Positions 5,267 through 24,550 of a DNA stretch of 64,000 nucleotides are shown here, piece by piece; positions within the stretch are counted from its first letter, which is position 1, and the number at the start of each line of letters is the position of its first letter. Position numbers and translations under genes: made by a program. Below the pieces are notes generated by a model. The model did no database searches. It was not told where the DNA came from and saw only the letters and a list, made by a program, of their open reading frames with translations. Source of the stretch: Penicillus capitatus (lineage: Eukaryota > Plantae > Chlorophyta); assembly GCA_965649825.1 (NCBI GenBank), contig OZ287707.1, forward strand, positions 426,292 to 490,291, written 5' to 3'.

Positions 5267-8169
5267 TTACGACGTCCGTGCATTCCGATCGAGGATTTGA
5301 TCCAATAGATTTGAACAGAGAACCGACGTGGAAGGCAAGGCTTGTGAGGGAATCTTCGACCAGTTGGCGAGATCCAGTTGTGTCGCGCTCTCTGCATCGA
5401 CAGAGTCGACATCCATTGCATCGGTGTGTCGAGCAGCAACACCAAAGGCCATTTCAAAGACAGAGGGCATTTTTTCGTTCTCTGTCGCCGAGTCCTCTTC
5501 CGATTTCAGTGTTAAGCTTCCTGTCGAGCATTTGCGATCAGAATGCATTCCGTTGCTGCTCGATACCTGTTTCTGTTTCGATGGCGTACTGGTGTGATGA
5601 AGACAGGATCATCAGAGGGGCATGTGTATGCCTGATACCATTCTCCATTTGGCGACCAGATTTGTACAGAGGTGTGCCTGGCTGGGTAAAGTGAAGGAAA
5701 CGGATGGGGTGGGGTCGTCTGGAATAGAGAACACAGGGTGTGCTGTCTCTGGGATCGAAAACCGCCACGGAAACGCCTCCTCCTGTCCTCTCCCGTTCCC
5801 TGTGCACATTTACAAGGCTCCTTCCTGTACATTAGACGTATGAAAAAGAGCTGACCAGCTGCCGTCTGTTATGTCTCTCAAAGTGACGGCAAATTTATCG
5901 GAACTGGAATCGACAGTGAGACAGTCGATGGCGAGCTTGGATGCCCATCGCACCGTGAGGCTTTGAAGATCCCAGACAACGAGGAGAGAGGCCATCGGAA
6001 TGCAGCCGACCTGACATGCGGCACTGAATAAACAGTGACAGAATGGGATCGTTCTTACTAGAAAATCAGATGCTCCGACAAAACGCAGTTGAGAGAGTTT
6101 CGTTTTCTGTGGAGCATCCGGAAACGATACATGTCCCAATGTCACCAAAGTTGTTGGATCCCACAGTCCCACCCCGGATGGATAAGCCACAGCCAATACA
6201 GAACCGTCACTGCTGAAGCAGCATTCCCCTAGTGGCTGATCTGAACAATATTCCATCGGATGTGACCATCTATTCGTGACACAGACAGAACCTCTGAACG
6301 ATCCAATCGCCTTGCATCTCCACAAGCTGCTCTGATCGGCAAACTGCCTGGTCCACAAACGAAAGCTCCCTTTTGGACTCGTGGTGACAACGAGATCGTC
6401 AACAGGTGAACAGCAGATGGCAGCAATGCCTCCTCTGCATCGCCACTGGTTATTGCTGATGGCACGGCAAAGGAAAGGAGACCAGACTTGTGGGGATCCA
6501 TGACTTCGGTGTTGAGATGAAATGTATTCTCAGAGGCACTCCAGTCAAAAAACCGCACGTCTGTTTTGATCTCGCTGTCGATCAGCTGACTACGAACCGT
6601 CACTGCTGCCAGAACTGTTCCAAGAGGATTGAAGACGATAGATTGGAGAACGGGCTCGGTGGAGTGATGCCCTGGGTCTATTCGGTGCTTCGTTTTCGAT
6701 ACAGCCATTCTGGACACCACCTAACGAATCCTGCTCATCTCAAAATGGACAGAGACCGAGAGACCTGCAGTTTGGCAACGTGTTTGTCCTGGGCCAGATC
6801 ATAGAACTGAACTGAACAGCTGTCGATTGGAAGGACCAGATATCCAGTTCCTGGCTGCACAGCATAACACCGGCCCTCTTGCTGTCGTCGCTCACAGAAC
6901 ACGGATGCCGTGATCCCATAAACCGAGAGTGTCACCTGCCGACACAAATCAGAGAATCTATGGCGTGCATATGTCCATACTTTGTAGTTGGAGCTGTCGA
7001 CGATTTTGAAGCTGTTGTCCTGGAATGCCACGAGAAAGAGTGACGGCCTGTGAGGATGGATCTCCATTGCCGTTGCGTTCAACCCCAGCCTCGGTACAAA
7101 TTTCATGTTCAGATCACTCAAATGCCATGACACCTCCACACCACCATCACCCCAATGAAACACTCCTCATCCTTTACAGCAGGACCATACCAAGACACCT
7201 TCCTCTCCAATAGAAAACAGAAAATGGCCATCGCCTGAGAATCGAAGAGAGGATGCTGCAGAGGCATGCCAGTGAAGGGTGATCGGAATGCGTTCTGCGA
7301 TGATCGACCCCTCGGAGTGCATCATGTTCTGATACAGCAGGATTTTCCCTGAAGTGCATCCCACAGCCAGTTGCTCATCCATTGGATCCACACAGACACA
7401 CTTCACAATGCCTCTCATTCTTTGCCCTGTCACGGTAGCATCGTACGTGCACACGTTCTGGAAATGTCAGATGCCGACAGCTGCGTTGATCGGGAACGGA
7501 TATCAGCGTTGCGTCATCCGTCTTGGAACGGCACACGATGCACAGTGTTTTGCCAGAAGGACTCAAACAGAGCGAAGATCTATGGGATAACTCAAGACAG
7601 AAGCTTTCATCCCGTTGTAGATCGGGCAGTTTATATCGCAGAATCTAAATCCATCCACGCTAACAGCGCAGTGGCACTCAGAAACATGAGCAGGATTGAC
7701 CTTGGACCCTTCTGGCCTCTCTTTGCAGAGACAGCTGACGTACACGACACCCATCACATCGCAGTACTCCTGACCACACCAGCTTTGATGTGACAGGAGA
7801 CGGATGTGCCACAGAGAGCAGTACAGACCATGTCTGTGATTTCGGAGCATTCGGGCAGAACATCGCAAGCGGTCACTCTCCTCTGCAGCACGAAATCCCA
7901 GAGCAGTATCTTCTCTTTCGTCGCCACCACGATCTGCACCGCCCTCTCATTCCATTCATCATGATCCGACAGACCACCTGCGTCGATGCCTCTCCTCCGA
8001 GTGTCGCGATTTTGATCACTCTGTGATGATGCGATTCGGAGATCCGTCGGGCCGTAAGGGCACTGTACACGTAGAGTCCCTTCTCTCCCGCCGTCGCCAC
8101 GTACTTGCCATCGCGTGAGAACGTCGTTCCCCTTCCCACGATCCGTGCTCCGCCGTAGAAGGCAGACAT
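5267..8169 (-). CDS. WDR75: WD40 repeat small-subunit processome protein WDR75/Utp17, multi-exon
   Basis: ATG at 8169 (MSAFYGGARIVGRGTTFSRDGKYVATAGEKGLYVYS); ITLHWHASAASSLRFSGDGHFLFSIGEEGVLVW; second propeller exons; C-terminal LPSTSVLCSNLLDQIL ending at 5267. Confidence 0.85.
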
Positions 8170-8310
8170 GACCTTGTACAAATCCGCCTCGTCTTGGCGT
8201 CTGCTTTGCTCTCTGACCACGCCGACACGGAACGCGATGTACGACAATTCAATCGGTGCCGAGATGAAGGGAATCGTGTCGGGTACGTCCAATGCAGCAG
8301 TCCTATTTCG
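8030..8310. repeat. Direct repeat copy 1 (~281 bp): WDR75 5' coding end plus upstream promoter
   Basis: Aligns with 24551-24830: 2 differences in the 140 coding nt, about 13 differences in the ~141 upstream nt. Confidence 0.97.
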
Positions 8311-9144
8311 TTCCTTTCATCCGTTCCATTTTTGGTTCCCTTCCAGTCAATGATTGAGACAAATGCGACGAAAGAGATGCAAGATTCTCCCAAGATGATG
8401 TGAGAAATGCTCAGAGATACATCGCACTTCACTCCACCCGACGAGCTTACAGAATCCAGCGTCGATCCTCAAAAACAGGGCGAATCGATCGAGCCGTCGA
8501 CACATGCCACATCCAAACTGCAGCGCTGTTAAATAACGAAAAAGGACGGCGGAGACTTAAACACCTCGTTGAATCGACGGAGCTTATAGAGAAAAGCGTT
8601 GCACCTCCTTTCATCCTCCGTCCCGCCGCTCCTTTCAAACTCAATCAACTGGGCCGTCTTTTTCGCTAACTTGTTCGTGCTCTTTTGTCAAGTCATGCTA
8701 ACAGTGGCAGGGATGGCAACACATCCGCGTGCCCCTGTGCCAGCAACGGTCGAAGGAAGGAGGCTTTATTTCGAAGAGTCCTTGAGACAACTGTAAGAAA
8801 TAGAAACTGCTGTCATTGCTACACCACAGTTGCTGAAGAAATCAGGTGATAGAACCTCGGCCTCTGCTTTAATCGACGTTGACTTATGATGCAGATTCTC
8901 GTCCGTCCGTCCGTTGAACGACGAAGATGTTGACCGCGTTTTCCTTAACTGAAGCTATGAAGACGGCAGATCGATGTGATGTCGATCTTGTGCTGCAGAA
9001 TGTAAAACCTATCCGCCTTTTCGCGTTTGCTGGATTGCGTCCACTTCTACGATGAACGCGTGCACAGTGATCGAACCTCCTCGTGAACTCGCCGCCAATG
9101 AACTGGGCCTACCTAATACAGGCAGGTCATCCATTTTCGTAATT

Positions 9145-9860
9145 CTGTCGCGGCAGTACTACGGATCCGCTGCGCGTCCGACGCGACAGTATTGCATCAA
9201 CAGTAGTATTGGCGCGTTCTGATACGCTGCCGCGGTGACAGTACCATCGTGGCAGCGCGAAAGAACGCGCAGATACCATCGTACCTGTGTATAAAAGATC
9301 TTTCTCGTTGTTTTCTTTGTCAAAAAGAAAACAAACGAAAAAGATCTCTATACACTTAGAAAATGCAACCAGTGACAATGACGGAAGCAAGAGCACAGCT
9401 GGGGGCGGCCAACTTCGACTGGGGGATGATCGGGCCGGTGCTGGCCAGGATGGTGGAACACGTGGGGAGGATTAACGGGGCGGTTCGCAGGCGTGGATCG
9501 GCGATAGCGCCGGTGCGTGGAAGGGATGATTTGAGGAATTGGGTGTATCTTTCGGTTCGGGATTCTTTGGCGATCGGCAACCAAGTGGGGGTGGTTACGT
9601 GGCGTGTCGTAATGAACCGTGTACTTGGGCGGTTAATTCACCATGGGGTTACGCAGCAAGGAAATGCAGTTCAAAGGGATGAACTTGTGTGGGAATTTCA
9701 CCTCTTGTGTACGACAGTGAGAAGGCGAGGGGACATTCGGGCCATCGGAGATACCGTGGCAACACACTTTGTGGATTCGTTGTATGACTTATTCGATCCA
9801 AATGTGTAACGTCGTGGTTTGGTTGTTCAAGTTGCGGAAACGCGCACTGTCGCATCAACG
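9145..9860 (+). mobile_element. Hairpin-flanked orphan cassette, copy A (intact ORF)
   Basis: 5' cgcgtccgacgcgacagtattgc (9173-9195, identical at 16512-16534); cagtagtattggcgcgttctg (9201-9221, identical at 16705-16725); inverted repeat 9212-9220/9262-9270; AT-rich palindrome 9287-9355; ORF; 3' motif ggtttggttgttcaagttgcg...tcaac shared with the other copies. Mobility is inferred. Confidence 0.7.
9363..9809 (+). CDS. 148 aa intronless orphan protein of the cassette family
   Basis: ATG to TAA ORF (MQPVTMTEARAQLGAANFDWGMIGPV...RAIGDTVATHFVDSLY). Homologous reading frames at 16853-17295, 22393-22832 and 23023-23178 conserve residues while codons diverge. Confidence 0.8.
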   Translation: MQPVTMTEARAQLGAANFDWGMIGPVLARMVEHVGRINGAVRRRGSAIAPVRGRDDLRNWVYLSVRDSLAIGNQVGVVTWRVVMNRVLGRLIHHGVTQQGNAVQRDELVWEFHLLCTTVRRRGDIRAIGDTVATHFVDSLYDLFDPNV

Positions 9861-9889
9861 TCGCCCATGCACAGAACGTCTCCGTCCGC

Positions 9890-9990
9890 ATCAACGTTGC
9901 CCGCATAAACTGCTTTGTTTTCGGACAATTGCGTGCCATGTGTCCCTCACAGCGACACCTATAACTAGGATGATGCTGTTTTGGCATTTA
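9890..9990 (-). pseudogene. Degenerate gag-like zinc-knuckle remnant
   Basis: YRCRCEGHMARNCP resembles a CCHC knuckle (Cx2Cx4Hx4C) with altered spacing; flanking frames are stop-ridden. Confidence 0.3.
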
Positions 9991-10369
9991 TCGTTTCCGC
10001 ATCTTCAGCTTTTACTTTATCTACTTCTCCGAATTCCTCCGCGGCACATGCTAATTGGCATGGGGACACCCTTCAGTCGTGCTAACGTTTTAGAATCCTT
10101 CTTTCATGTCAAGTTGCTTTTAAGCTTTTACATCGTCATTTTCCAATTATTTAATGCTTAGCTGGTTGGCGCTCAATGTGTCTTGTTTGATAGCTCTGAC
10201 TTTACACGTTAATGACTGCTAATTTGAAAAAAAAAACACTAATATTGTATCAAAGTTCTGTTTATTTCATGACAGGTGGACTCTTTTGACGACAGTTCCA
10301 GTGAAATGCTTCTGACTTCTTTGTCTAGATGTTCATTATCAAATCCGAGTCTTTGAAGGCGGATTTTTT

Positions 10370-10450
10370 GTCGGGATCGTGTTACCGCTTCGAAGAACTC
10401 GGAGTCGAAAGACGCGCGACCGACGACGTTAAAACGTACTCAGATGTCAG
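10370..10450 (+). repeat. ~81 bp dispersed repeat
   Basis: About 85% identical by eye to the reverse complement of 23453-23534 (core gagtcgaaa.acgcgcga.cgacgacgttaaaacg). Confidence 0.9.
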
Positions 10451-12033
10451 TACTGTCACACTAAGGCGCTATTCGTACGGGATGGTGACAGGACGGGACG
10501 TTGATTTAAATGATAAACTTTACTGTCACTCCATCTTTTCGTGTCCTTGGTTGCGCGACGTAACCGTCGCCGCTGGGTCGCGGTAGAAGGCGTGAGTGAG
10601 GATGATTGGGAGTGAGTTCTTGTGAATTTCGCACTGAGGTTCTGTAGAAGCTTCTACAATCTCATTGTGAACACACTCTTGAACTTCAGCGGTTTTTCCT
10701 GATGTCACATCAAGGATCGAGTATTCAAGCGAGGCTCAGACACACAAATCATCTTTCGCTCGAGATCTAAGTTTACACTTGTGTCTGTGAACCACCAACA
10801 AGCTGTTTCTGTTTGTCAACAAACATTCGCTGTCTATCGTCGTTGTAACAGGCTGTCTCTTCGCTGCTACCGTTGGCATGGCCTCCGATACTCTCGCCCA
10901 TCTTCATCTTACCTTAAGATTTCCGACGCGCTTGTGAGATAAGCCAAGCCGGGAAGGACTCCGGTGACAATGCTCTTCCTCCTCAGTTCTCCGGCCAAGG
11001 TGGCGACAAAGGGGAAATACGAGTCGTCCATACAGAGGACGTCGAAAGACAGGTGGAGAAACAGGCTGCCGGAAAAGGGTTCTTCACAAGTACCAGGAAT
11101 GCGAGATTAATTAGAAGACGCTATCGCTGTTAAGTTCACGCGGTGGTTGAGGATTCACTAATCTTAAGAGCTAGCGGCTGCGAAGTTCGGGCTTCGCACC
11201 GTATCCATCACCCGACCGTTATTGAATAGTCATGTCGGAGTCGGACACCCGTCGCGATCGATGGTCGACGCTCCAGTGTAGTTCTGCCACCATCCAACCG
11301 TCTCCGTTGGCAAGGTAAGGGGGCCGATACGACAGCTGCATCTCTAACAAGAATATAAATCAAAGATAGCAAAGGCTCTCCGAGAAACGATTCGGCTTTG
11401 CAAAAACCGCGCCAAAGAAACGCCGGCGACGTGGCTGGTTATGACACCATGAAAGACAAGCTTCAAATGCAACGTCAGAAATAGACGCCGAATCTGGCCA
11501 CCTCTTCATCGGCAGCTGCAGAACCAATGGGTAAGCAAATGATCAGCGGACAATCTCTTGAAACTTCGTCTGTTTGACAGCATCCTACAAAAGAAGCGCT
11601 ACGTCATCGTGAAGCGATCGACAATCGCACTGCTGCATTGCATCCCCCGTTCCGTGCAAAGGAGACGTAGACACGAATTGAAGTGTCGGATAGAATGGGT
11701 CGTTCTTTGGACAGTTCGAGGCAGAGAATTCCACAGCGTGTGAATCCAACGGTCGCTTCAGTGTCTCAGATAAGAGTCGTGCCCACTACACCGAGGCCGG
11801 TGCTCAGTCATACAAGTCTGCCGGTTCCAACAGTGCCCGCTGCTACATGAACACCAACTGACCTAGTTCCGCAAGCTGCAATCATTCAAGGTGTTGAAGG
11901 CCGTGATCAACACAACATAGGACACAGATGGGGAAACATAATCCCATTTGCTGGCAGAGAAACACAGTTTGGCAATGGCTACGGACCGCTGAGGTCGAAT
12001 GCCAGTCTGCCAGCCAGTTGACCCTTTGTTCTT

Positions 12034-12560
12034 TTATTCTTTTGTCAACGAACTTCTCAGACAGATTGTCCTGTCGCCGTCAAAGGCAGCTTGTGTCTCT
12101 TTGAATTTCTCCTGGAGAGAGAAGATTTTCATGCAGGCCTTGTTTGCGTCTGACTCCACATCCATGCTGAACTGTTGTTCCTTTTGAAATAGTTGTTCGA
12201 GCCTCTCTTGCTCCGCGCTTGCCTTGCCACTCATTGCGCTTACGTGCGACATTCTTCTGTCGTTCTTCGACTTCCTGTCGAAGCTTCGCGACTTCTTCCA
12301 GACGAAGCCAGTCGATCGTTCTTCTCTTTTCGCGTAGCTCTTCTTGCACCTCGCACCTTTCTCGCAGCAAGGGCAAACGTGCCCGAAAAGGTCAACATTT
12401 CGTCTGTGTTCACCAACCAGTACCGGCTGTTGTCGTCATAATCGTCCGGCTGCGTCCACACAACTCGTCCGAGTAGTTCAGAATATACCCTTGCGTCTTC
12501 GCCCGCGTCAGTGATGATACTCTTAGCACGGAATTCTTCCAAAACATAGTTCCCGCGCAA
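12034..12560 (-). pseudogene. Frameshifted coiled-coil protein remnant
   Basis: Three overlapping minus-strand ORFs in successive frames (12240-12560, 12080-12376, 12034-12252) join into an E/K/R/Q-rich helical sequence (LLRERCEVQEELREKRR...EQERLEQLFQKEQQ). Confidence 0.45.
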
Positions 12561-12936
12561 GCTTCACTCTTCCTGGCGACTCTGCTCTCTTCTACTTCGT
12601 CGTGCTCGGCGCATCCTTGCAATGCTTTCTTGAAATCCCTTGGTACGTCTAGACGCGTCTAGACACGGCTCGACTTCCGCACAGTAAGGCGCCACAATGC
12701 ACACAGCAAACGCGCAACGTCACACAGACGGAGGTGACCATTCAGCCCTCCAAAAAAGCTGGAGTAAAATAGACGAGCGCGCTTGTCGCCAAGAACAGGC
12801 GAGGCCCCATGCGAAGGTGGCGAGGCAATCGACAGCACGACGACATCAAATACGTCACGGCAAGAATGCCAGCCATCTCTGCAGCAAAAGAAAATGACCC
12901 CAGATAAGGGCATTGTCTTGACCAACCGACAGCTCC

Positions 12937-15900
12937 ATGAAGCGTGCCATCCAAATGACGCCCAAAGGACGCCCAGAAACGCCGACAAGAGTGAGAACTG
13001 GAGATCGAAGCCTTCTCCTGAACGACGCCAGGACAGAAGACGCTCTGATAAGAGGTTGGAGCTAACTCATGTTCCGTGAAGGTGACGAGAAGTGTGATGT
13101 AGACGCCCGAGAATGGATCCGCCCCTCAAAGGAGCAGTGGTACATCCCTTACCATCGGGTCCCATCACCGTGTTGCACCGCCCAACGGGCGATCCGTGAC
13201 GAATCCGGCGTTCCGACAGACGGTGCAGAAATGGTGGGACGAGAAGAGGAAGTGGGCACGATCTCTTCCTTGATCGAATCCGGTCGACATGTTGTCATGA
13301 TCACCGGCCTTCCTGGTATTGGAAAGACAACGGTCGCCGCAACCGTCGCAGATGAGTTGCTCAGGAGCCAGATTCTGCAGAACATTCGCTATCTCAATCT
13401 CTCCAACGTGACCGAGCTCTCCGACGCTGTCTCCAGAATCGGAGCAGCTCTGAAGCATCCGATCTACCAGAGTGCCCTGAGCAGCGGTAAATCTGTCCTT
13501 CTCCGTCTCATCCCTTACTCATTTCTGCAGGCGGATGGCAGAGGATCGATTGAAAAAACTGGTTAAAACGACACGGAAATACCCGTGCGCCGACGGGTTG
13601 GGTTCTGGATGGACTGGATCATCTGTTCTTGGATTCCCATGAACGGCAGGGGCTGTTCGATATTCTGATGGAGATTTTGGAATTCTTTCCCCGGTTGCAC
13701 ATCATCATGGTCTGTTTGGAGGCTCCGAATCCTTCAGAAATGCCCTTCGTCGACGAAGTGATTCGGATCGGCCCTTTGCCGGAACAGGCTGCCTATCAAT
13801 TCGCAGAGAGCCTTCTGGGCGGCGCGCTTTCGAAAGGGGAAGCTCGCCACTTAGTATCAGCCACGGCAGGATTCCCACTCGGCATCAAGATCGGCGGAAG
13901 CAGTATCTTGGCCGGCGGCTGCTCCGCCTCTCACTTGGAACAGCGTCTGGATCAGGTGAGGGATGGGGATGGTGTCGAAATGCGAGCTCCTTGGAATCGA
14001 GCACGCGATATGATTCGAGAAGGCATCTCAGCTTTGTCGCCAGAAGATCGACGTGGACTCATTCTCCTCTGTCAATGTCCTGATGCCTTTACTGTGGAAC
14101 ATGCAGCAGCTGTACTGGGTCAGTTACGCAAACCGACACAGACCTGGTCATTGCTGAGACGGCTAATGATGAGAGGCTTCGTTCGATACATGCTCACCGA
14201 AGGCAACCGCCCTGCGTCCACTGCACTGTCTTCTGACGCGTGTCTTTCTCTGCAGGGACCTATCGGTTAGAGGAGGCCGTTCTGGATGTGCTGACACATT
14301 GCACGGCCATTCGAGATCGTGTCTCGAGGGAAGGCGAGTACGAGGCCGTGTCGCGAAATCTAGAGATCGATGAAGATCAGAGGGATGGAGCACGGGCGGG
14401 ATTGGTGGTCTACTATCTTCGATTGCTGGATCGAGCGCTGATGGTCTTCCGTTCGGGTTCCCGTCTCTCAACATACCGTCTGCTCGAACAGGAGCGCGAC
14501 GGTCTCGAACGGTTCGTTCGGTACATAACGGAACCATCTGTCCGGCGAAAACTGCTGTCGACGGGATCCAAAGGAAAACTGCTGAAGCTGCTCAAGATCC
14601 TGAGCGATTTCGTCGTGGATGTGGGAAAGCACTACTTCACCTGGAACCAGGTACGCAACATCTGTGCTTCCATCGGATGGCTGTGGGAAGAAGACATGAC
14701 GCCGATCTACGACGAAGTGTCCTACAAGGTCCGCTTGGCGCTGGCCAATGCCTTGGCCTGCATCGGAGAGCGACGAGACGCCGAGATCATTCTGACCCAA
14801 CTGGAGACGTACATCGACGGCCTGAACACGTGTACGGAGCGAGATCTCAAGGCGAAGGCGGATGTCCTGGTCCTCAGAGCCAAGATTCGGCATCTCGTCG
14901 GTCGCTACCCCGAAGCCGAGCGCTACTTTACTCAGGCACTGAATGCCCAGGAGAGTGCTTACGGGCGCGATCACTTCACCGCTAGTCGTACGTACTCACT
15001 TCTGGCCACGGTCCAGCAGGTAGGTGCTACTGTCTGGTGGTCGAGATCGATGCGTTGTGTTTGTCTGTGCAGATTCTGCAGAAATTCGGCGACGCAGAGC
15101 ATTCGTATGAATGCAGTTTGAAGATCAGAGTGTAACACATCGGCAAGAACGTCGTCGAAGCGCCGACGGTCATGCATAACTGGGCGTCGCTCAACCACAG
15201 ACTGGGAAACACGGCGAGGCAGGGGAGCTCTACACCAAGAGCCTCACTCTTCGGGAGAAATACCTGGGCCATCGCAACACCGAAGTCGCTTCCAGTCTGA
15301 TCAGTCTGCCGGCCGTCAAGGCCTGCTGAGTCACTATGAGTATGCGCGAGGCCTCTACAGTCGAGCCCTGGCGATGTTAAAAGACGCCATCGACGAAGAT
15401 CACCAGGCCGTGGCCTACGCATCGACAAGACTGGGGGTGTTGCTAGAGACGCAGAAATGCTATGACGAGGCGATCCAGCACTTTGCAGAGGCGCTGGTCA
15501 TCGACGATCGAGTGTACGGAGAGAGACACGAACAGGTTCAGGGATCCATCGGCAGAATTCAGAGGGCGGCGCTAAAGCACGCGCAGACACTGCACACGTC
15601 TAAGCAACTCGTTCGATGGAAGGCGTGCATCGAAGATCTTCTGAAGAAGTACCGTTTCAAGTGGCCGGAACGGACGGGTCCGGACAGCAGGACTGGATTT
15701 GCTGTCGACACGTCTGCAGATCTGTTGGCGACCCCGCAGTCCATCTCAGTGGCCATTGATCCGGAGGCTTCTGGTCCGTCTGATATCAAGACGGAGACAA
15801 CGACGTCTTTCCAGGAATTCGCACCGGCAGTCAAGGACCACACAGGTGTCGATTTGGATAGCACGCTCTATCTGAATAGCTCGGCCTTGCAACTGAATGT

Positions 15901-16300
15901 GGACTCGACTAGCAGAGGTCCGCCTCCGCCTGGATTGCCCAGAACGGCAGGTGCGTATTCTGCCGATCCTCCGTCCCAAGAAGCTTCGGGTATGAAGAGA
16001 TACTCGTCGACCGACATCCCCAAGGCGTCGTCTTCGATCATGGGATCATCTCAGAACAGCGAGCTGAATTTTGGTCAGTACTCGGGACAGCCGGAGGGAA
16101 ATCAGACCATCGCTCACGCCTATTCACTCGTGCACGATAATTCTCAGTTCGGCGTGGCCAACACCAGCTCTCTGGAGACGACCATCTCTCCCAGAACCAA
16201 TCAAGACATCGCCTATCCGATCCCTGCCTCGTACGGCATCCCACCCTGCGCCCTGTCAGACAGCTCGCTGTGTGATCTAGGTCCTACGTCACATATCACA
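12937..16300 (+). pseudogene. NB-ARC-like STAND NTPase with winged helix and TPR repeats (NLR-like), disrupted
   Basis: ATG 12937; intron 13055-13102; Walker A ITGLPGIGKTT; Walker B WVLDGLD; GC-AG intron 14203-14255; kinesin-light-chain-type TPRs (AERYFTQALNAQESAYGRDH, ELYTKSLTLREKYLGHRN, HFAEALVIDDRVYGERH). Lesions: stop or frameshift at 13551-13558, in-frame TAA 15133-15135, two frameshifts between ~15200 and 15335. Confidence 0.85.
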
Positions 16301-16339
16301 GTAAGGTTAGCTTTTATTATCTGTCATTACGAATTAAAA

Positions 16340-16372
16340 AACGGTTGTAATGTGTCACACATTACAACCGTT
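16340..16372. repeat. Perfect 33 bp palindrome
   Basis: aacggttgtaatgtgt-c-acacattacaaccgtt (16 bp arms, 1 nt centre). A related hairpin cggttgta-agatcg-tacaaccg lies at 16393-16414. Confidence 0.97.
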
Positions 16373-16447
16373 ATTTTAGTTTTGTACATCGACGGTTGTA
16401 AGATCGTACAACCGCAACATAAGGTACATCACGCGCTGTACATCGGC

Positions 16448-16685
16448 GCAATACAGTCGCGTCGGACGCGCCGCGGATCCGAAGCGGCAGTGCGACGGAT
16501 AAATGACGCGCCGCGTCCGACGCGACAGTATTGCGCAGATGTACGTGATGGCGCAATACTGTCGCGGCAGTGCGACGGATAACTGGCGCGTCCGATGCGA
16601 CAGTATTGCGCAGATGTACGTGATGGCGCAATACTGTCGCGGCAGTGCGACGGATAAGTGGCGCGTCCGATGCGACAGTATTGCG
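16448..16685. repeat. Tandem array of 75 bp hairpin units
   Basis: Units start at 16522, 16597 and 16672 (partial). Each is a 15 bp arm gcgacagtattgcgc, a 14 nt loop agatgtacgtgatg, a 15 bp arm gcgcaatactgtcgc and a 31 nt linker. An additional ~25 bp inverted arm at ~16448-16470 pairs with 16512-16536 (1 mismatch). Confidence 0.95.
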
Positions 16686-16852
16686 TCTACTCTATACGCA
16701 TCGACAGTAGTATTGGCGCGTTCTGCTGCGGTGGTATCGCCACTGCGGCAGCGTATCAGAACGCTCCGATACCATTATGGCTAGAATTTAGGGTTCTCTT
16801 TGAATTTTTTGTTGCAAAAAACAAACGTACAAAACCGTAACTACCAGCCATA

Positions 16853-17295
16853 ATGGAGCCAGTGACTTTTTCAGAAGCCGTGCAACAGCTGGCGCGAACA
16901 AGATTCGACTGGGATATGATCGAGCCGGTTATATCCGAGATGATGGAATACACGGGGAAGTTTGACACGTGGGATGCATTATTTTGTCCGCACTTTCCCC
17001 CGTTTCTGGGTAGGGATGAGTTGCGGGAGAACATGGGTCGCGCGGTTGGCGATTTCATGGAGATTGGCAATACGCCGCGGCAGTTTCGTGGAGAGTCGAC
17101 AAGGACCGTCTGAATGCTCGGATGATTCATTGGGAGGTTATCACACAAGACAATGCGGACCAAAGGGATTGACTTTTGTGGGCGTTTTACCTTTTGTATC
17201 AAACGTTGAAAAAGCGATCGGACGTTCGGGCCATTGGAAAGCAAATGGCAACGAACTTTGTGGATTTTCTGTACACACTGAACACACTAGATTAA
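16853..17295 (+). pseudogene. Disrupted paralog of the 148 aa orphan
   Basis: MEPVTFSEAVQQLARTRFDWDMIEPV...; 1 nt deletion near 17075; then AVSWRVDKDRLNARMIHWEVITQDNADQRD*LLWAFYLL...RAIGKQMATNFVDFLY, with in-frame TGA at 17170-17172 and terminal TAA at 17293-17295. Confidence 0.9.
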
Positions 17296-19503
17296 GGTCG
17301 CGGTTTGGTTGTTCAAGTTGCGAAAAACGCGCGCTATCGCGTCAACAAAAAAGGCCCACCGCGCCAACGCCGATCGCGCACAAACCGCTTCCACGGAGTT
17401 AAATGGCGTAACGCTTGGTGGGACGCACTGTCATAGAGAAAACTGTTCGCAGTTAGAAGCAGGTTTTCACGTGGACAAGACACACAAATGCTTTCGACTA
17501 GAATTTGCACGTCCAGCGCCATGATGTTGAACTAAATAATCCGCGTCCCGCATACCCACTTATCGAACAATCGGAGAAACGAGATGGGAAACCTGGTCAT
17601 AAATTCTTCTGCAAAGCTCACCAATCCATCCGGCAGAGTGACCTCTGTTGAATGTCCATGACGAATGGGAACTTCTTTCGGCCGTCCAACTTACAGAGTC
17701 CACCTGTCAGAGCCAGGATGATAAAACGGATGCAAATCTGAATATGGCGTACTTTCCTTATGAACGGGACAGGCGAAATGCAAGTTCACTCTTTCATCGA
17801 TTCATGGCAACCGTTGTTGTGATATTCTACATTTACAAAAGAACGCTTTAGATGACATTATTGTAACTATGGGTCCGAAGCTGTCGCCGTTCGATACGCG
17901 CTTAACGCGTCAGCGACGATGGCGTATCGCTTAACAAAGACTGTTCAGACGATAATGTTTCGAATTTATGCAATTCCGCGGACAGCTGCGCGAAGGTGGA
18001 CAACAAAATCATCCGATCGTTGGACACACGTTGAGAAAGAAGTTATGCGAAACATAGCAAATGCCATTACACGACATCCATTCGGTTCGATTTATAAGGA
18101 TCGAACACGTCTTGACAGAGAACAGGCCAGAGCAAAGAATCCGGAATCATGGATACAATGCGCACAAAAGCGCTTTCTTTGCTTGAATACCTTTGGATAC
18201 CTTTATCCGATGCATGCCCGTCGCGAACCCATGCAAGCATTCGACTCAAAAACCCAACGTCTTGCCGCCCCACAAACAAAACAATCGAAACCTTGTCTCG
18301 AATGGGCGCTTTTTAGTCTCATCGACATCCCAAAACAAACGAGACCAACAAGTCCCTCAGCGATCTAACCGTCCGACCACAGTACCGGTCCCGCGTCCCC
18401 TGGACCAACTCTCGACGCCTCAGCGCTCGACCTACCGTGGAGCGAAGTAACAAACCCGTCTGGTCTACCTCTCTCCAGAGTCTCCCCCTAGCCGACATAC
18501 GAAGCAATGCTTACACCGACGCAAAATGCCATGGACCACGGCTTGTTAGAAAAACCCCATGCAAAACACCCGAAAAATGTACTTGCGACGGTAAAGAAAA
18601 CAACAAAGACGTTCAGAAAGAAAAACGCATGTCGAGCCACGGCGAAGGCAGAACTCTGGATCAGCATGCCGCGGTCAAAAAAGGTACGTGGCCACCCACA
18701 GCGATACTCATTATCAAGCCATCGTCGCCCCACACTCTCCCCTCTTCGCACTCGTTGGTCGTCGTGCTTTGGCTTCACCACGTATTCGCCATCCATATTC
18801 GCCCCTTCATCACACTGTCGCCGAGCGATGTGACACTGCCTTGTTCTGTGAGGGTCAACCGTGCGAAGGGGTGCTGCCTGTCTTGTCAACTGCGTCTTGG
18901 GACGCCTTTCTCTGGCCCTGAACACGAGCTGACTCACCATTCTAGAAGGGTTACGTCAGCAGGCGACTATATAATGCACAATCTGAACCTTGTTTTACCT
19001 TCTCCGAACACTGTAACAAGTCTTCTGCTGTTATCTTCTGGCGCGGCGCTTCCGCGGTGACACACACCTCATTGAGTAACGCATTAGATCGCCAATTCCT
19101 TATCCTCTTGCGTTGCCCCCTGACATTGACTTCTCTCCTCACCCAGCGCCTCCGACGAAGCCTAAACCGCACGCCAGACCGCTTCAACGGTGTCGCGTAG
19201 GTTTTTAGATGGAGACAATTTGAACGGTGGGCGCATGTAAACCTTTGAAACGTAAAGTCTTACAAAACGAAAGACAAGATCTGTACGTCTACAACGCTTC
19301 TATAGAGTGCTATATTAAGTAACAAAAAAGAATAGTCTGCGAAGATACCGAAATCTACTCGGAATCTGTGACGTAGAGGCCGCGAGTCTATTTGTGGATA
19401 GGAAGGTATAGAGAACCTACGACCTGTTGCTTGGCGATCGACACAAGTGTAAGTAGATGAGCCCGTCGTTAAGGGCGTGTTGGCTTAACACAGCAACGGT
19501 CGC

Positions 19504-20181
19504 CTATCTTCTTGACCTCTTCCGAGAAATCTTAGATGAACTCCCCGCATTGCTGTCGACCTTCCGCTTCGCATCGTCTGCTTTTTTCAAACTTGCCATC
19601 CATTCTTCTCGAGCACGCGTGCTTCGAAGGCGGTATCGGCGCTTCACCTCTCGCACTCTTGTCAGTTCCTCTTCGTACGACAAGCTCCGCCTACGGCGTT
19701 TAGAACCGCTTCCCTCAGGCTTCGCCGTCGTTTCCACAACCACGTCCCCATGCGCGTCATCGACCGCCGCTTCGGCCATTTCTTCCGGCCTGGCCATATC
19801 GACTAGGACGAACTCGAGGAAGCGAATCTCCAGTGTGCGTCGTCGTCGACGGACCCCCGATATGGTGGCGCTGAGCTGGGACCTCATGTATTCTGCAAAC
19901 ATTACGATCTTGAAGAAAGCAACTTCGTCGGATGGGTCGATTAAGTTCCTCGCCGCCATAGCGCTACGCAAAGTGTTAACGAGGTCAGCACAGGTGCAAA
20001 CACGGGCACCGCTACGTGTAGTGCCGTCTGCTCCGCTAGCACCACAAGGAGGCCTACTTACACGTAAAGGAGAAACGACGGCAGGCAGCTTAAGCACCCT
20101 GTTCAGCCTAGCCAGCCAATCCAAACTTCGCAGCCTACACACCGCATGACACGTGCGGTCTTCTCCGAAGATGGCTCTCAT
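19504..20181 (-). CDS. Hypothetical protein with basic NLS-like and coiled-coil C-terminus
   Basis: 225-codon ORF from ATG 20181; SKRRRRS and charged helical tail. No family recognised, and an antisense ORF of similar length overlaps it. Confidence 0.3.
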   Translation of the reverse strand: MRAIFGEDRTCHAVCRLRSLDWLARLNRVLKLPAVVSPLRVSRPPCGASGADGTTRSGARVCTCADLVNTLRSAMAARNLIDPSDEVAFFKIVMFAEYMRSQLSATISGVRRRRRTLEIRFLEFVLVDMARPEEMAEAAVDDAHGDVVVETTAKPEGSGSKRRRRSLSYEEELTRVREVKRRYRLRSTRAREEWMASLKKADDAKRKVDSNAGSSSKISRKRSRR

Positions 20182-21365
20182 ATGCACAATACAAATCTAA
20201 TTTGCGATCGCGACTCGAAATCTCGCACTTCTCGGGATTAGTGGCATCGTATCGCAAACCGGATAAAGAATGTCGCGTCAAAGTATCGAAAATAAACAAA
20301 TCCATTACGGTTATCTCTCGCAAAATGCTGGAGTCGTGACGTGGGGAGAGTTTAGCGGCCGTTCTCGTGATCTGATAGTGGCGCGGATGCATACAACAAA
20401 AAGATGACGAAGAAACATGGGTGACGAGGCATTCGCAATAGGTATGGCAATTAATGGAGAAGCGATCTCCTACCGAAAGATGTCTCCCATCAACGCAGAG
20501 ACCGAAAAGGTTTCGGGCGAGAGGAGTAATGCACTAGAAGGATCTCGAGCACCTGATTGGAGTACTGTCGTACTTAAGGCGAATTATCATGGATCTCGTG
20601 AGGCTCGTTGTAAAGACCGCTCGGCAGCCCCTTCACTTTCCACTCCCTCCCAGTTGTCATCGGATCGTATCGTATCGGACATGAAACTCTTCCTGGTTTT
20701 CGTGTCGGGCGAGGACGCCGAGAAGGGGGAGCAGAAGGGATTTGGTCGTCTTCGGAACGACTCGTCTTGACACAGGCGCAGTGGAAATCTTGGTTAAGAT
20801 GATGACGGGTTAGCGAGGATGGCTAACACCAAACCGGGAGTTCGGCCAAGGTCGACTTGATACAGCAACGATAAATAGCAGATGACTTTGACAACAAATT
20901 GTATGATACAGCAAACACAAACTTATACACAGGATATAAGCCCAAAGCGAATATTTTGTGTCCGGCACTCGCTTTTATGCTTCTCCGGTGTTAGGGCCGA
21001 CAGGACAAGGTAGGAAATCCCAGGAGTATCAGGAGCGAGTTCCCAATAAGGTTCTAAAGCTCGTAAGAACTTCAACGTGAAATTCGAGACAAACTCACAA
21101 TCCTCGTTGTTGTGACTTCGTCGCAGAATCCAAGCGCCGCGATAGTTACGTCACGTACTCAAGGACGCAAAACAACAGATGACAAATTAACGTCCACTCA
21201 TTACCGTCGAGGTGCACTGCGCAAACACACGGATTACAGACGAGACAGAGTTGTTACAGAGGACGTCTTTAAGTATCCAGATGTTGATATTACCCGGAAG
21301 GGGACAGCTGTCCAAAGAGTACAACAGCGAAGCTAACAGCTGTCCCTTGACAATTACAACGTCCT

Positions 21366-22031
21366 ATCAGTAAATCGGTTAGAATAGCGCCGTATTTTCA
21401 CACTTACATGATGTTGTCTCTGGCCAAGACGAGATTGGACGGTCTAGCCGCCAGAAAGTTCGTGGAGAACATGTGCTGCAAGTGTGAGGTCTGCAGTATT
21501 GGAAAAGAAGACGTTGGAGAGGGCCTCAACTTCATTGAAGTCAACGAAACATCAGACGGCGAAGCGGTCGACATGTTTGGTTCACGATTACAACAAGCGA
21601 ATGCCCATTCGAAGTGTGTCAAAGTCGCCGTTGATTACTTCAGCAGATACGCAGAAACCGAAACAGTGCGTTCTCCGACATCAGTGGACATTGAGGAATT
21701 CATTGCAGACTGGATACGAAAGCATGGGAGAATCGGCATGCTCGTTGCAGGCTCTGACTCGCAGTTCACCTCGCCTGGTTTTGCCACATAGACCAAAAAC
21801 CGAAGAATACAACTCAGGCCCGGCGCAGCTTATCACGCTCCTCAAATGGACTGGTTAGGGAACGACACAAACGCTACTCGGTCACATCCAACGATTGAGG
21901 ACTGCATTCGGCCGTCCATGGAATCAATTTGTGTTAGACACTCAAGACGCAGTCAACTCGACTCTGAACATGGTGAGCAATGTCAGTGGACAGTTGTCCA
22001 CCTTCGTGCAGCTGTCCAAAGACCTGCATAA
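21366..22031 (+). pseudogene. Retroviral/Ty3-gypsy-type integrase remnant
   Basis: One frame: H2C2-like YFHTYMMLSLAKT...MCCKCEVC; rve core VAVDYFSRYAET...IADWIRKHGRIGMLVAGSDSQFTS; in-frame TAG 21789-21791; then RRIQLRPGAAYHAPQMDWLGNDTNAT, matching the 'YHPQ.NG..ER.N' region in degenerate form. Confidence 0.75.
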
Positions 22032-22344
22032 ATTCTTACAATTATTGTTCGAACAGTCTTTGTAATCCTGTCAGAATGACTAGAGCAGTCACATCGTGAC
22101 TGCCTAGATTTCCGAGGGTTCTGTCTCCGAGGGGGCACTTACTAAGGGTTTACGTCACCTCAGGATCCTTACAAATACGGGAACGTGGCCCTGTAGATAC
22201 TTTGCTCTGCAACACAGTGAAGATTTCCCCTAACAAATCCTTACGCCTTCGTCGTTAACCCGTTGTCCGTTGACAAACACGACACCGGATGAACCCAAGG
22301 CGCTCCGGTTGCGTCTGCGTGGTGGGCGTTTTTTGAAAACGTTG

Positions 22345-22890
22345 ATGTGATAGCGCGCGTTTTTTCGAAACTTAAATAACCAAACCGCAGTCTTAATGCA
22401 TATTGTTCAATGAATACAAAACATTCACAAAGTTTGTTGCCATTTCCTTCCCAAAGGATTGAACATCCCTTTTTCTTTTGAACCGTCGACACAAAAGAAA
22501 AAACGCCCAAATGAGTGCATTCCCTTGGTTTATATTGTCCTCTGTCATAACTTCCCGAAAAAACAACCTCTCTCGCACCCGTTGTCTGATGTCATCCCAT
22601 GCATCAAACCCGGCGTTACAGCCAATGATAAAAAGTCACGAACCGAATAATACACCTTCTCCCTCAAAGAATCCCTTCCCCAAACCGGCGGGATCTGCAG
22701 ACCATGCAAACGAACCGACACATTCACCGTCCCCGTGTAGTGCACCATCTCCTCCACCACCGGCTTCATCAACACCCAGTTAAACCCTGTCGTCTCAAGT
22801 TCTGTTTGCGCGTCTTTAAAGGAAACTGGCTGCGACAGTATTGCAACGCAGTACGTGACGGCGCAGTACTGTCGCGTCGGACGCGTTCAT
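22345..22890 (-). mobile_element. Hairpin-flanked orphan cassette, copy C2 (5'-deleted, frameshifted ORF 22832-22393)
   Basis: Hairpin 22832-22885 is fused directly to codon 2 (QPVSFKDAQTELETTGFNWVLMKPVVEEMVHYTG...). A frameshift leads into ERLFFREVMTEDNINQGNALIWAFFLL...FGKEMATNFVNVLY*. The 3' motif ggtttggttatttaagtttcg...tcaac follows. Confidence 0.8.
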
Positions 22891-23022
22891 CGCGGAAGTG
22901 TACAATTCGACAGCTTTGGGGGAGCGGATTCGTTCTTTTAACAAGAATGTGCGTTGACAATGGCTGTAGGTTACACAATAGGTCACGCAGTAATGTCATT
23001 TTTGAGAAGAGGATTTTGTATC

Positions 23023-23345
23023 ATGCACCGGCGCGATCGCCGAACCATGCCTGCGAACCTCCCCGTTAAACCACCCCATATGTTCCACCATCTTGTCCAC
23101 CACCGGCCCGATCAGCCCCCAGTCGAAGTTGGCCGCCCCCGGGTGTGCTCTTGCTTCTGTCATAGTGACAGATACCATTCGTGGCAGTGTATAAGAGATC
23201 TTTTTTGGTTGTTTTCTTTTTGACAAAGAAAACAAAAAAGAGTATCTTTTATACACTGCCACGAATGGTATCTGCGCGTTCTGCCGCGCTGTTGCGGTGG
23301 TACTGTCACCGCGGCGAATCACGACTCGCCAATACCACTTTAGTT
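23023..23345 (-). mobile_element. Hairpin-flanked orphan cassette, copy C1 (3'-truncated)
   Basis: ATG 23178, MVSVTMTEARAHPGAANFDWGLIGPVVDKMVEHMG..SAIAPV, closely similar to copy A at DNA level until ~23023. Upstream palindrome 23169-23274 has 26 bp perfect arms. Confidence 0.85.
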
Positions 23346-23452
23346 GTGTATAGACAAGTTCGCAGCTGTTGGAGGCTAAGGTTAGGAATCCTTGACCATT
23401 AGGGGTATTTAAATAGGACTTCCGACCTTTGATCAATCTCGTATCCCTGGGG

Positions 23453-23534
23453 CTGACATTCGAGTGCGTTTTAACGTCGTCGTTCGCGCGTTTTTCGACT
23501 CTGAGTTTCTTCAAAGTGATCACATGATCCCGAC
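23453..23534 (-). repeat. ~82 bp dispersed repeat (partner of 10370-10450)
   Basis: Reverse complement aligns with 10370-10450. Confidence 0.9.
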
Positions 23535-23559
23535 ACAGACACTCTTTGAATACTAGGCA

Positions 23560-24450
23560 CGCTCCCATCCTCCCCGTTCACAGAAGTGCTGCATCTTGCA
23601 AACTTGGTAACATCCGAACAAGACGAAGAATTTCTTTTCAGGTCGGCACTCTTCCTCCTGGTTGGTGGATAGACAAAGCGTCTCGGCACCGGATAGCAAC
23701 AACGCCTCGAATCCGGCCGGCGTCAGCCATCGTTCATCAACTGCTTGCAGATTCGGTAGCGACGCCATCGGGCGTGACGGCGACAGGCGGACGGCATTAC
23801 AAACTGCGACTCAAGTACGGCCTTCTGGGCCGTCCGCCGTCCAATAACCCGGCTACCAAGTCGTAACAAGAAGTCCATCCTTTGTCTTGTCCTCCTTGCC
23901 GAACCTCTACTGATACAGTTGCAGGACACTTCGTTAGGATGCAGTACTAAAGTGTTTCGTGTTAAGATCTGTGGATCGATATTGAATCTGTTCAACTGCA
24001 GGCCACGAGAACAACGACTTTGTTCTCCGTGTCAGGAAAAAGAACGATGTTAGGTTGTCAGGCTATGCGTTGTTTGTTGCAATCTGTATGCTCATAGATC
24101 GTGATGGTGGCGGAGGTCAAGTGACAGTGGGCAATCAACTTCAGAGGCCGAATGTGCACAATTCAGCCGTATTAGCACCGAAGTCATTGCAGGATGCATC
24201 TCGGATCCAGTCAGGAGATGCGGGATTCGCTATACTCTTCTTAGGTTCAGCGGCAGATGCTTTCTCCCTTCTTGACAATTTAGAGATCAAGATAGACGGG
24301 TATCCAGGTAAGGATCGTCGAAGCCCTTAAAGCATCCAAGGAATGCAGATCGGATTGTAAGGGCGGCAGTTGAGCTAGCCAAACTCTGGAGAACAGACAA
24401 GTTCTTGCAAAGGCTTGATGTACGAATGAGTGTGGTGTCTTCCTTTGTCA
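23560..24450 (-). pseudogene. Possible decayed leucine-rich-repeat gene
   Basis: Stop-interrupted fragments with LRR-like spacing: SLCKNLSVLQSLASSTAALT, SLNCQEGRKHLPLNLRRV, LSLDLRHHHDL, LPNLQAVDERWLTPAGFEALL. Confidence 0.3.
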
Positions 24451-24550
24451 TCGACACTGTGTTCTAGGCTGCTATGATTGTTGCTGATGCAGATACCGCG
24501 CCGGAGATCACCGGCCGAGGCGACGTCTTAGAACCGCACGATCGAATTCT

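Follow-up and report, generated by a model that had tools for sequence, protein, structure and literature searches.

A small orphan gene family with palindromic upstream regions, probably confined to one lineage, in the chlorophyte Penicillus capitatus

Introduction

Orphan multigene families in the segmental-duplication islands of eukaryotes encode species-restricted proteins, include many pseudogene copies, and have members that lie within bigger duplicated blocks with unique breakpoints and that are mosaics through gene conversion. The family described here has all of these features, and in such a setting the promoter and 3′ region would be conserved because they are copied along with the gene. 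It differs in the elaborate region upstream of the coding sequence, where three successive palindromes include arrays of a 14-nt dyad-symmetric motif, and in that part of this region is far better conserved than the coding sequence. Trypanosome VSG cassettes have upstream 70-bp repeats, conserved 3′ ends, many pseudogenes and mosaic genes. An upstream repeat array, a conserved 3′ end, pseudogenes and mosaicism are also found here, but the protein is small, with neither a signal peptide nor an anchor visible in its sequence, and the family has no known expression site or demonstrated diversifying selection.

Mobile systems provide further comparisons. Like MITEs and other transposons with terminal inverted repeats, for which the element MITE X serves below as a yardstick, the units are small, have inverted repeats, are present in several copies and carry no transposase of their own. 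Yet here every inverted repeat lies on the same side of the ORF and none pairs one end of the unit with the other, the ends vary by copy, and there is no target-site duplication or empty allele. GC-rich subterminal hairpins are shared with Helitrons and HUH-dependent hairpin elements (IS200/IS605-like elements, CRESS or parvovirus-like replicons), and the variation in the flank on the hairpin side is reminiscent of Helitron read-through. In contrast to these elements, no Rep/helicase or HUH protein, fixed 5′ terminus or viral relative has been found, and the hairpins immediately precede a promoter-like core and ATG in every copy. Integron-type gene cassettes likewise combine one short ORF with an imperfect inverted-repeat site, and have a core that is swapped within conserved flanks. 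However, the present units have their own promoter-like region, with repeats upstream rather than downstream, there is no integrase or attachment site, and the host, a eukaryote, has spliceosomal introns.

Results

The window is the whole 64,000-nt stretch analysed, positions 426,292 to 490,291 of contig OZ287707.1 (assembly GCA_965649825.1, forward strand), and the DNA-level reading of this genome covered ~190 kb. The initial annotation had described four homologous units in it, each with hairpins, an AT-rich palindrome, an intronless ORF and a 3′ motif. All four (A to D) are present at or near the places given there, with their parts in that order, but A, B and C are longer than had been thought. 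The ORF is intact in A alone (148 aa); B and C are frame-broken, and D keeps only about the first 50 codons. Nor is the family limited to four copies. At least seven further members, divided between the same 894-kb metagenome contig and a second one, lie outside the window: E, F and G in L001, H1 and H2 in L008, I in L009 and J in L007. J has in addition an allelic copy on the half-coverage contig L013. Four copies are intact (A, E, H2 and J), three of them outside the window, and the majority have decayed. With copies at five or more sites across two contigs, amid ordinary housekeeping genes, some duplicative spread has occurred; for its mechanism we infer the route set out in the Discussion. 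The features of the window are as follows, with L014, the parental locus of a STAND-TPR gene, and L012, the locus of a related species, as references for identity.

8030–8310, strand not assigned: left copy of a 281-bp direct duplication, 94.7% identical to 24551–24830; by reading of the sequence, first exon of a WD40/WDR75-like gene
~9028–9861, + strand: copy A
9028–9138, + strand: remnant of the native STAND-TPR 3′ flank on the 5′ side of copy A; 81% identity to L014 12243–12349 and 74% to L012 12836–12948
9139–9195, + strand: A hairpin 1, one inverted pair of the 14-nt motif; arms 9141–9152 and 9182–9193, 92% complementary; includes the 23-nt block 9173–9195
9206–9276, + strand: A hairpin 2, GC-rich, with 32-nt arms 9206–9237 and 9245–9276
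9270–9355, + strand: A promoter-like core (CAGATACCAT at 9270–9279, TATAAAAG at 9290–9297) and AT-rich palindrome (9287–9355)
9363–9809, + strand: A ORF, intact, 148 aa, predicted six-helix orphan protein
9807–9861, + strand: A 3′ motif, beginning at the stop codon and marking the end of A homology
12715–16300, + strand: STAND NTPase-TPR (NLR-like) gene copy directly 5′ of B, with AAA_16/nSTAND3 and TPR_12 hits
16300–17887, + strand: copy B
16300–16856, + strand: B upstream module; palindrome 16336–16376, six 14-nt motifs in both orientations (16438–16690), hairpin 2, palindrome 3 (16772–16856)
16853–17292, + strand: B ORF remnant, with one frameshift and one premature stop
17293–17887, + strand: B 3′ motif (17293–17346) and 3′ extension
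22311–22903, − strand: copy C, tail to tail with B; hairpin motif pair 22829–22903, ORF remnant, 3′ motif
23022–23345, − strand: copy D; hairpin 2, promoter core, extended palindrome 23169–23274, about the first 50 codons
24551–24830, strand not assigned: right copy of the 281-bp direct duplication; the homology of 23346–24550 with L001 ends exactly at its start

Three consecutive hairpins precede the A ORF (9139–9195, 9206–9276 and 9287–9355), and DNA folding of 9130–9365 gives −62.6 kcal/mol, compared with −29.8 ± 3.3 kcal/mol for shuffled sequences (z = −9.85). B and E largely retain the stem of hairpin 2, for the most part by transitions on one side. The AT-rich palindrome of A is 84.5% self-complementary and ends 7 nt before the ATG, while the palindrome of D has arms of 38 nt that are 89% complementary. 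The motif array of B includes two 75-nt tandem units (16512–16661). In every locus scanned, the 14-mer is confined to the region upstream of family copies, apart from one outlier with two mismatches, about the number expected by chance, and the arrays are putative binding sites for a sequence-specific factor. Among six aligned copies the best-conserved non-coding block is that of the promoter-like core and the AT-rich palindrome, and it may function as a promoter; the TATA-like box is not retained in all copies. D is 83% identical to A 9202–9519. In C the promoter and start codon have been lost, and one frameshift is present.

At the 3′ side the A motif is 91% identical to B 17293–17326, and the motif from the stop codon is a putative 3′-end or UTR signal. 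The homology of A with every other copy ends at 9853–9861. The ~600-nt extension of B is common to E, H2 and I and absent from A and J; the B 3′ region has identities of 87% to L008, 85% to L009 and ~90–95% to L001.

The sharing of short upstream and downstream blocks by A and B, noted from the start, goes well beyond expectation. The 23-nt block occurs six times in the window with no more than one mismatch, always beside a copy, where shuffling predicts 0; the 21-nt 3′ block is the same in A and B and has three mismatches in C, where shuffling predicts 0.01. By comparison, the A and B proteins are 38% identical over 71 aligned N-terminal residues. The non-coding ends had been described as better conserved than the protein, and this is true even of J, the most distant paralogue, at 23% amino-acid identity. 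J retains the CAGATACCAT core, the beginning of the 3′ motif and a 27-nt stretch with 96% identity to B, and the 14-nt motif in inverted arrays, the promoter-like core and the post-stop motif accompany the gene there too. Conservation of blocks at both ends beyond that of the protein argues for cis-acting signals of some kind.

What does the gene encode? The initial annotation recognized no transposase, HUH, recombinase or viral fold, and searches of families, structures and viral sequences bear this out: the protein has no match in Pfam, the PDB or viral proteins, a search of 1.84 billion representative proteins returned only its own paralogues, and no relatives were found in viral contigs. 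AlphaFold2 models the A protein as a six-helix bundle (pLDDT 79.9, pTM 0.74), the pLDDT rising from 46 to 80 once J was added to the alignment. Four ORFs of 144–149 codons are retained at identities as low as 23%. Given that ORF length is kept at such divergence, and given the predicted bundle, this looks like a real gene. Values of dN/dS are 0.6–0.7 for A versus E and H2 and 0.19 for A versus J, with J as a whole at 0.19–0.34. Synonymous divergence among the intact copies ranges from 0.07 to 0.63 along the ORF, and the central segment (codons 30–75) is hypervariable, with pN close to pS between A and E. Of the changes that separate the two alleles of J, six are non-synonymous and one is synonymous. 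By eye, no signal peptide or membrane segment is visible in the protein sequence.

The STAND-TPR copy 5′ of B is a 5′-chimeric segmental duplicate. It is 96% identical to L014 from 13182 and 95.7% identical to the L001 copy from 12726, its 5′ part matches another place in L012, and, compared with the 857-codon ORF in the related species, its reading frame is broken in at least two places. The native STAND-TPR 3′ flank (L014 11972–12383, L012 12620–12971) is found 5′ of A, H1, I, E and B. It joins the units at four different points, A and I having the same one, and A departs from the ancestral flank where the first hairpin arm starts. The parental locus and its L012 orthologue are collinear across 14.7 kb, and neither contains the family ORF or the 14-mer. 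In no unit was the interrupted flank found to resume on the far side.

The units are embedded in larger segmental and inverted duplications. A 16.2-kb island is bracketed by the 281-bp direct duplication, the window and L001 have common blocks of 92–96% identity, and three pairs of copies are tail to tail (B/C, H1/H2 and G/F). The junction of D with the flank shared with L001 falls in an 8-nt stretch that is similar (7/8) in the joined sequences. The ORFs are mosaic. The B and E loci are ~95% and 90–95% identical in their flanks but just 40–70% identical in the core, with the drop from ~95% located at 16250–16300.

Discussion

We consider it probable that these units are an orphan gene family restricted to one lineage, each gene with an unusual palindromic control region, and that they are not a transposon. 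Two observations fit this reading less well. The divergent core within flanks of ~95% identity is also compatible with cassette replacement, and 27 nt of non-coding sequence at 96% identity, where the protein is at 23%, exceeds what a transcription-factor site typically needs; ectopic conversion or a recombination signal could be responsible for the latter.

The conserved ends had been taken as signals of a mobile or self-replicating unit, and this reading is not supported. A non-autonomous cassette, with hairpin arrays and 3′ motif recognized by an enzyme acting in trans (HUH, Helitron-like or a recombinase) and one-end read-through carrying donor flank, would be in keeping with the spread over at least five sites on two contigs, with end motifs that outlast the protein, and with a donor flank that varies on the hairpin side only. 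Moreover the J 3′ motif matches the inverted 14-mer at 11/14 positions, as well as or better than all but 0.4% of background windows can do; for the motifs of A, B, C, E, F, H1, H2 and I, however, the match is no better than background. The copies have ragged ends without common termini, target-site duplications or resumption of the flank, and comparison of the window with the ENA contig and the haplotig reveals no copy that is present in one and absent from another. By contrast, the hAT-like MITE X of the same genome (L007 ~10603–10853) is cleanly bounded and has an 8-bp target duplication, and its sister allele is empty. A scan of ORFs near the units revealed no Rep, helicase, transposase or integrase, and viral contigs contain no relatives. 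The copies therefore come close to simple segmental duplicates lacking defined ends, although at no fewer than five sites rather than one, and we regard a mobile cassette as improbable. Somewhat less doubtful, though still unlikely, is a diversity-generating array, in which a few expressed copies are varied by conversion from a silent, broken archive, the flanks supplying homology and the protein being under diversifying selection. The divergent core inside conserved flanks, the mosaic ORFs, the numerous pseudogenes, the hypervariable central codons and the excess of non-synonymous changes between the J alleles all point that way. Yet dN/dS is below 1 overall, the numbers are small (seven differences between the J alleles), and with no signal peptide or membrane segment visible an exposed role is not evident; relaxed constraint with ordinary conversion would explain the same data.

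The association with STAND-TPR sequences could suggest a functional partnership between the small gene and the NLR-like gene, as in NLR–effector pairs: B and E each have a co-oriented STAND-TPR copy immediately 5′, and flank remnants precede A, H1 and I. The empty parental locus largely refutes this: neither it nor the orthologues in related species have an adjoining family gene. In addition the STAND-TPR copies that adjoin units are chimeras with broken frames, no STAND-TPR gene lies near J or A, and no fusion of the two proteins occurs in the protein library, making such a partnership very unlikely. It is more unlikely still that misassembly created or scrambled the repeats. The window and the ENA contig do disagree mostly in the repeat-rich part at 12–25 kb, but these independent contigs are collinear with only 5–7 small gaps over 20 kb, a separate haplotig confirms J, and the paralogues differ by 5–60%, far beyond what collapse allows.

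On the gene-family reading, then, the unit would be a small intronless gene of ~145 codons for a soluble six-helix protein, flanked by compact control regions of its own: upstream, the 14-nt dyad-symmetric motif arrayed in both orientations, followed by a promoter-like core and an AT-rich box ~70 nt before the ATG; downstream, a motif from the stop codon that may act as a 3′-end or UTR signal. The gene would have spread by segmental, tandem and inverted duplications at the DNA level that took in neighbouring sequence. The 3′ flank of a duplicated STAND-TPR (NLR-like) gene may have been fused to an early copy, the composite then being copied again, and paralogues would later have swapped segments through gene conversion. 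The long palindromes were probably points of breakage and template switching, which would account for the tail-to-tail pairs and the truncated copies of the family.

The family and its copies

The small intronless ORFs of the window belong to a genuine gene family, undescribed and species-restricted, whose predicted control region is unusually palindromic. Four units, designated A to D, had been proposed in the initial annotation; all four are real, and the order of their parts is as given there. Their positions were nearly right, but the extents were too short. Copy A starts near 9028, and copy B occupies 16300–17887, reaching that far because its 3′ extension of ~600 nt is common to three copies elsewhere.

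Parts of copy A (forward strand)
9139–9195, hairpin 1, an inverted pair of the 14-nt motif
9206–9276, hairpin 2, GC-rich with 32-nt arms
9287–9355, hairpin 3, a 69-nt AT-rich palindrome before the ATG
9363–9809, ORF of 148 aa
stop codon to 9861, 3′ motif

Folded as DNA, the 9130–9365 region of copy A gives −62.6 kcal/mol, compared with −29.8 ± 3.3 kcal/mol for shuffled sequences (z = −9.85). The ORF of copy B contains one frameshift and one premature stop, in copy C the promoter and start are lost and the frame is shifted once, while of copy D only about the first 50 codons remain. The palindrome before the ATG of copy D (23169–23274) is extended to arms of 38 nt that are 89% complementary, and the original start-codon region has been overwritten. 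This looks like template switching within the hairpin.

A word-indexed search of 5.8 billion proteins returned four relatives only, all on the same contig, and an HMMER profile search of 1.84 billion cluster representatives gave eight matches, none beyond the family. The loci of the protein matches yielded seven further copies outside the window.

Copies beyond the window
E, locus L001, ~100 kb away on the contig, intact, 144 aa
F, L001, broken
G, L001, 5′ half only
H1 and H2, locus L008, ~7 kb beyond window position 1, a convergent pair; H2 intact, 144 aa
I, locus L009, 4 kb from the contig end, hairpins fused to the 3′ half of the ORF
J, locus L007 on a different contig of 635 kb, intact, 149 aa, 23% identical to A

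An allelic copy of J lies on a half-coverage contig (the haplotig L013). The family thus numbers at least 11 copies at five or more sites, four of the copies being intact. Viral contigs searched by the 3′ motif and by protein contained no relatives of the unit. Three matches to a 19-mer of the hairpin block in JGI metagenomes share the motif alone, and were taken as chance.

The encoded protein

The family ORF is a real protein-coding gene under constraint, judged by conserved length, dN/dS below 1 and a foldable product. Length is maintained at 144–149 codons in the four intact ORFs. The dN/dS ratio is 0.19–0.34 in comparisons with J, for which synonymous sites are saturated, and 0.6–0.7 among A, E and H2. 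Between A and E non-synonymous change is about as fast as synonymous change over codons 30–75. The alleles of J differ by six non-synonymous and one synonymous changes, too few for a test of selection. Taken segment by segment along the ORF, synonymous divergence (pS) ranges from 0.07 to 0.63, and this unevenness indicates that the paralogues have exchanged pieces.

The protein had been described as lacking a recognised family, and we agree, as it has no match in Pfam, PHROGs or the PDB sequence profile. AlphaFold2 supplied with close paralogues only gave a poor model (pLDDT 46), for which Foldseek found no match in the PDB. With J and its allele in the alignment the predicted structure is a six-helix bundle (pLDDT 79.9, pTM 0.74) that includes two helix–bridge–helix repeats. 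The best PDB matches of this model in Foldseek are designed helical bundles, with none better, and there are none in BFVD.

The predicted control region

The 23-nt and 21-nt blocks are identical, as had been claimed for A and B; they are found beside family copies only, where shuffled sequence would lead us to expect none. In all the loci scanned the 14-nt motif (as at 9182–9195 in A) is likewise confined to the upstream regions of family copies, in arrays of one to six motifs in both orientations; a single outlier with two mismatches is about the chance expectation. Despite the 23% protein identity between A and J, J shares a 27-nt non-coding stretch with B that is 96% identical. Copy J also holds a 148-nt palindrome built of the 14-nt motif, and retains the CAGATACCAT core as well as the beginning of the 3′ motif. 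Upstream, conservation across all copies is highest in the core directly 5′ of the AT-rich box; the box itself is TATAAAAG in A, D and E, and different in B, G, H2 and J. The conserved non-coding blocks are probably cis-regulatory, and would act as binding sites for factors, as a core promoter and as a signal for the transcript end. Double changes occur in two of the 20 pairs of the hairpin consensus, variation that is too sparse to choose between DNA-level and RNA-level pairing. The idea that the 3′ motif repeats the upstream 14-mer in inverted form at the other end was dropped, the match being at background level in eight of the nine copies tested; J alone lies above this, at 11/14.

Is the unit mobile?

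The conserved ends had been interpreted as signals of a mobile or self-replicating unit. Over the ~190 kb of genome read, this fails every test applied. All the inverted pairs of copy A lie within 9139–9355, and the 5′ and 3′ ends do not pair. The junctions of A, B, D, E, H1 and I have no target-site duplication. The 5′ ends vary in position, both within the unit and within the donor flank described below, and the 3′ ends lie at 9861 (A), 17887 (B), 22311 (C), L001 11423 (E) and L009 10810 (I). The D junction falls within an 8-nt stretch in which the joined sequences are similar at 7/8 positions. No family copy exhibits presence/absence polymorphism between genome versions. A transposon with terminal inverted repeats, or a MITE, is not supported: there are no end-pairing inverted repeats, no target-site duplication or precise empty site, and the termini differ. 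Where a transposon has truly moved in this genome, it has left the marks that are missing from the family, as seen for MITE X, an element of ~251 bp just downstream of J (L007 ~10603–10853) that is absent at the sister haplotig (L013 ~10593–10600). Short terminal inverted repeats and an 8-bp target duplication mark this element, which is independent of the gene family; further copies are found at L009 9667–9805 and 11855–12102.

The unit was also compared with other kinds of element. Helitrons have 5′-TC and 3′-CTRR ends with a subterminal hairpin and insert at AT, the autonomous copy encoding Rep/helicase. The ends of our unit are not fixed, and Pfam identified no Rep/helicase in the larger ORFs around the window units or in one ORF of L001. 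A hairpin replicon dependent on an HUH enzyme, whether IS200/IS605-like or CRESS/parvovirus-like, is opposed by the lack of any match of the protein in Pfam, PHROGs, the PDB profile or Foldseek, and of relatives in viral contigs. In an integron, a gene cassette is a promoterless ORF with a downstream attC-type site, and the integrase and attI adjoin. By contrast, the repeats of this family are upstream and each unit has its own predicted promoter-like core; moreover the integrase domain is absent from the neighbouring ORFs scanned. Between B and C, Pfam gave no support for a retro-element or an integrase. Nor do the units appear to be parts of a larger composite element, since the 3′ extension is absent from A and J, repeat Y is a separate dispersed repeat and X an independent MITE. 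Finally, the unit might be a self-contained selfish module of gene plus site, in which the helical protein of ~145 aa would recognise its own upstream 14-nt dyad arrays and promote breakage or template switching, the unit being copied elsewhere with read-through flank. If true, this would be a eukaryotic mobile cassette lacking a canonical transposase, but we consider it very improbable.

Probable spread by duplication and gene conversion

An NLR-like gene encoding a STAND NTPase with TPR repeats (STAND-TPR) lies directly 5′ of B and of E. Its parental locus in the same genome (L014) is syntenic with the orthologous locus of a related species (L012), in the order EMG1, Pex16, STAND-TPR and lipase; the two loci are 86% identical across 14.7 kb. 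Both lack any family ORF and any copy of the 14-mer. Nevertheless, five units carry the native 3′ flank of the STAND-TPR gene on their 5′ side.

STAND-TPR sequence attached to family units
A, window 9028–9148
I, L009 8947–9893, in pieces
H1, L008 9124–9522
E, up to L001 9538
B, up to window 16300

The attached flank ranges from ~110 nt to >3 kb, and there are four different junction points among the five units because A and I share theirs. It does not resume past any unit. Thus the copies carried donor-locus sequence along with them, and were not inserted into the donor locus. A functional pairing of the unit with a STAND-TPR partner was rejected, the unit being absent from the parental L014, the locus L012 of the related species and the loci L010 and L011 of more distant relatives; since the parental locus is without the unit, their association is a by-product of co-duplication.

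Copies of the STAND-TPR gene
window 12715–16300
L001 5473–9538
L014 8396–12127, parental
L012 8926–12574, related species

The gene is intact in the related species (349 + 857 aa), and the three copies of this genome share the same frame interruptions. In the two non-parental copies the 5′ part comes from a different place (L012 17114–18018), the mark of a duplication junction.

The units sit within larger duplicated blocks that are 92–96% identical between the window and L001, and these, with the variable donor flank, point to segmental duplication. There are three tail-to-tail pairs. In the window, a 281-bp direct duplication (8030–8310 and 24551–24830, 94.7% identical) brackets a 16.2-kb island that contains A, the STAND-TPR copy, B, C and D. 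By reading, the 281-bp repeat is the apparent first exon of a neighbouring WD40/WDR75-like gene; the island (8311–24550) separates this gene from one encoding 869 aa. This bracketing suggests that the island arose by replication-based or duplication-based insertion.

Comparison of the B and E loci reveals a mosaic. They are ~95% identical through the STAND-TPR gene, 40–70% from ~16250 to 17290 (arrays, promoter and ORF), and 90–95% again in the 3′ extension. Decay in place cannot give such a high–low–high pattern. Either recent homogenisation against the parental gene made the flanks alike (the STAND-TPR copies of L001 and the window are 98 and 96% identical to that gene, respectively), or a distant paralogue supplied a new core. 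Each of these would be gene conversion, which is evident in the sliding identity of B and E and in the segment-wise pS. The pattern of the B/E core is the sole feature that sustains a reading as cassettes, meant as exchange between conserved flanks and not as transposition.

Two other repeats were observed near the family. Repeat Y is dispersed, and lies near family copies at three loci (window 18617–20004, L007 10938–15604 and L001 773–998) as several fragments in both orientations. In L007 it overlaps an ORF of 377 aa with a 60-bp tandem array (12876–13336), which has no match in Pfam. A repeat of ~80 nt, 85–89% identical, is found in the window at 10369–10450 (downstream of A) and 23453–23535 (upstream of D), and at L001 12197–12276. 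Lying inside short ORFs with a shared peptide stretch, it is probably a fragment of another duplicated gene.

Genomic setting

The DNA of the window is eukaryotic, with a GC content of ~50%. Genes lie on both strands and have short canonical GT-AG introns, for example a ribulose-phosphate epimerase gene near 53.3 kb; tRNA and Rfam scans of the window gave no match. An 894-kb contig from an ENA metagenome assembly (ERZ25074695 ctg340467) contains a stretch that is collinear with the window and 99.5–99.7% identical. The differences all fall at ~3–25 kb, most of them at 12–25 kb, with zero at 25–33.5 kb; they may reflect allelic variation, conversion between repeats or ambiguous polishing of a repeat-rich island.

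Elsewhere in the window, 39770–42277 on the reverse strand is a single ORF of 835 aa encoding a fused histidine methyltransferase/sulfoxide synthase of the ergothioneine pathway, of the Egt1 type. Among named sequences it is closest to euglenid transcripts (~50%), followed by diatoms (44%) and early-diverging fungi (~40%), and there is an 87% relative from a related species in another ENA assembly. A tandem array at 61027–61522 has a period of ~100 bp and units that are 87–93% alike, with long repetitive ORFs on both strands.

Significance of the family

On the best reading, segmental and inverted duplications multiplied the family and conversion reshuffled it, within an island where broken copies of an NLR-like gene are also found. 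What is new is the family and its predicted promoter architecture, not a new kind of system. A false lead is removed, since what appeared to be a new class of hairpin-flanked mobile cassette is best taken as an orphan family that multiplied through segmental duplication. Three observations together provide a reusable recipe for separating the two readings from sequence alone, namely that the parental locus is empty, that the donor flank varies and that the MITE of this genome behaves differently.

The remaining interest is modest but real. This is an undescribed protein family with a confident predicted fold and no relatives, and it has a compact control region of three palindromes, part of which is conserved far beyond the protein. 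The control region could open a route to promoter architecture and palindrome-driven rearrangement in an uncultured protist lineage.
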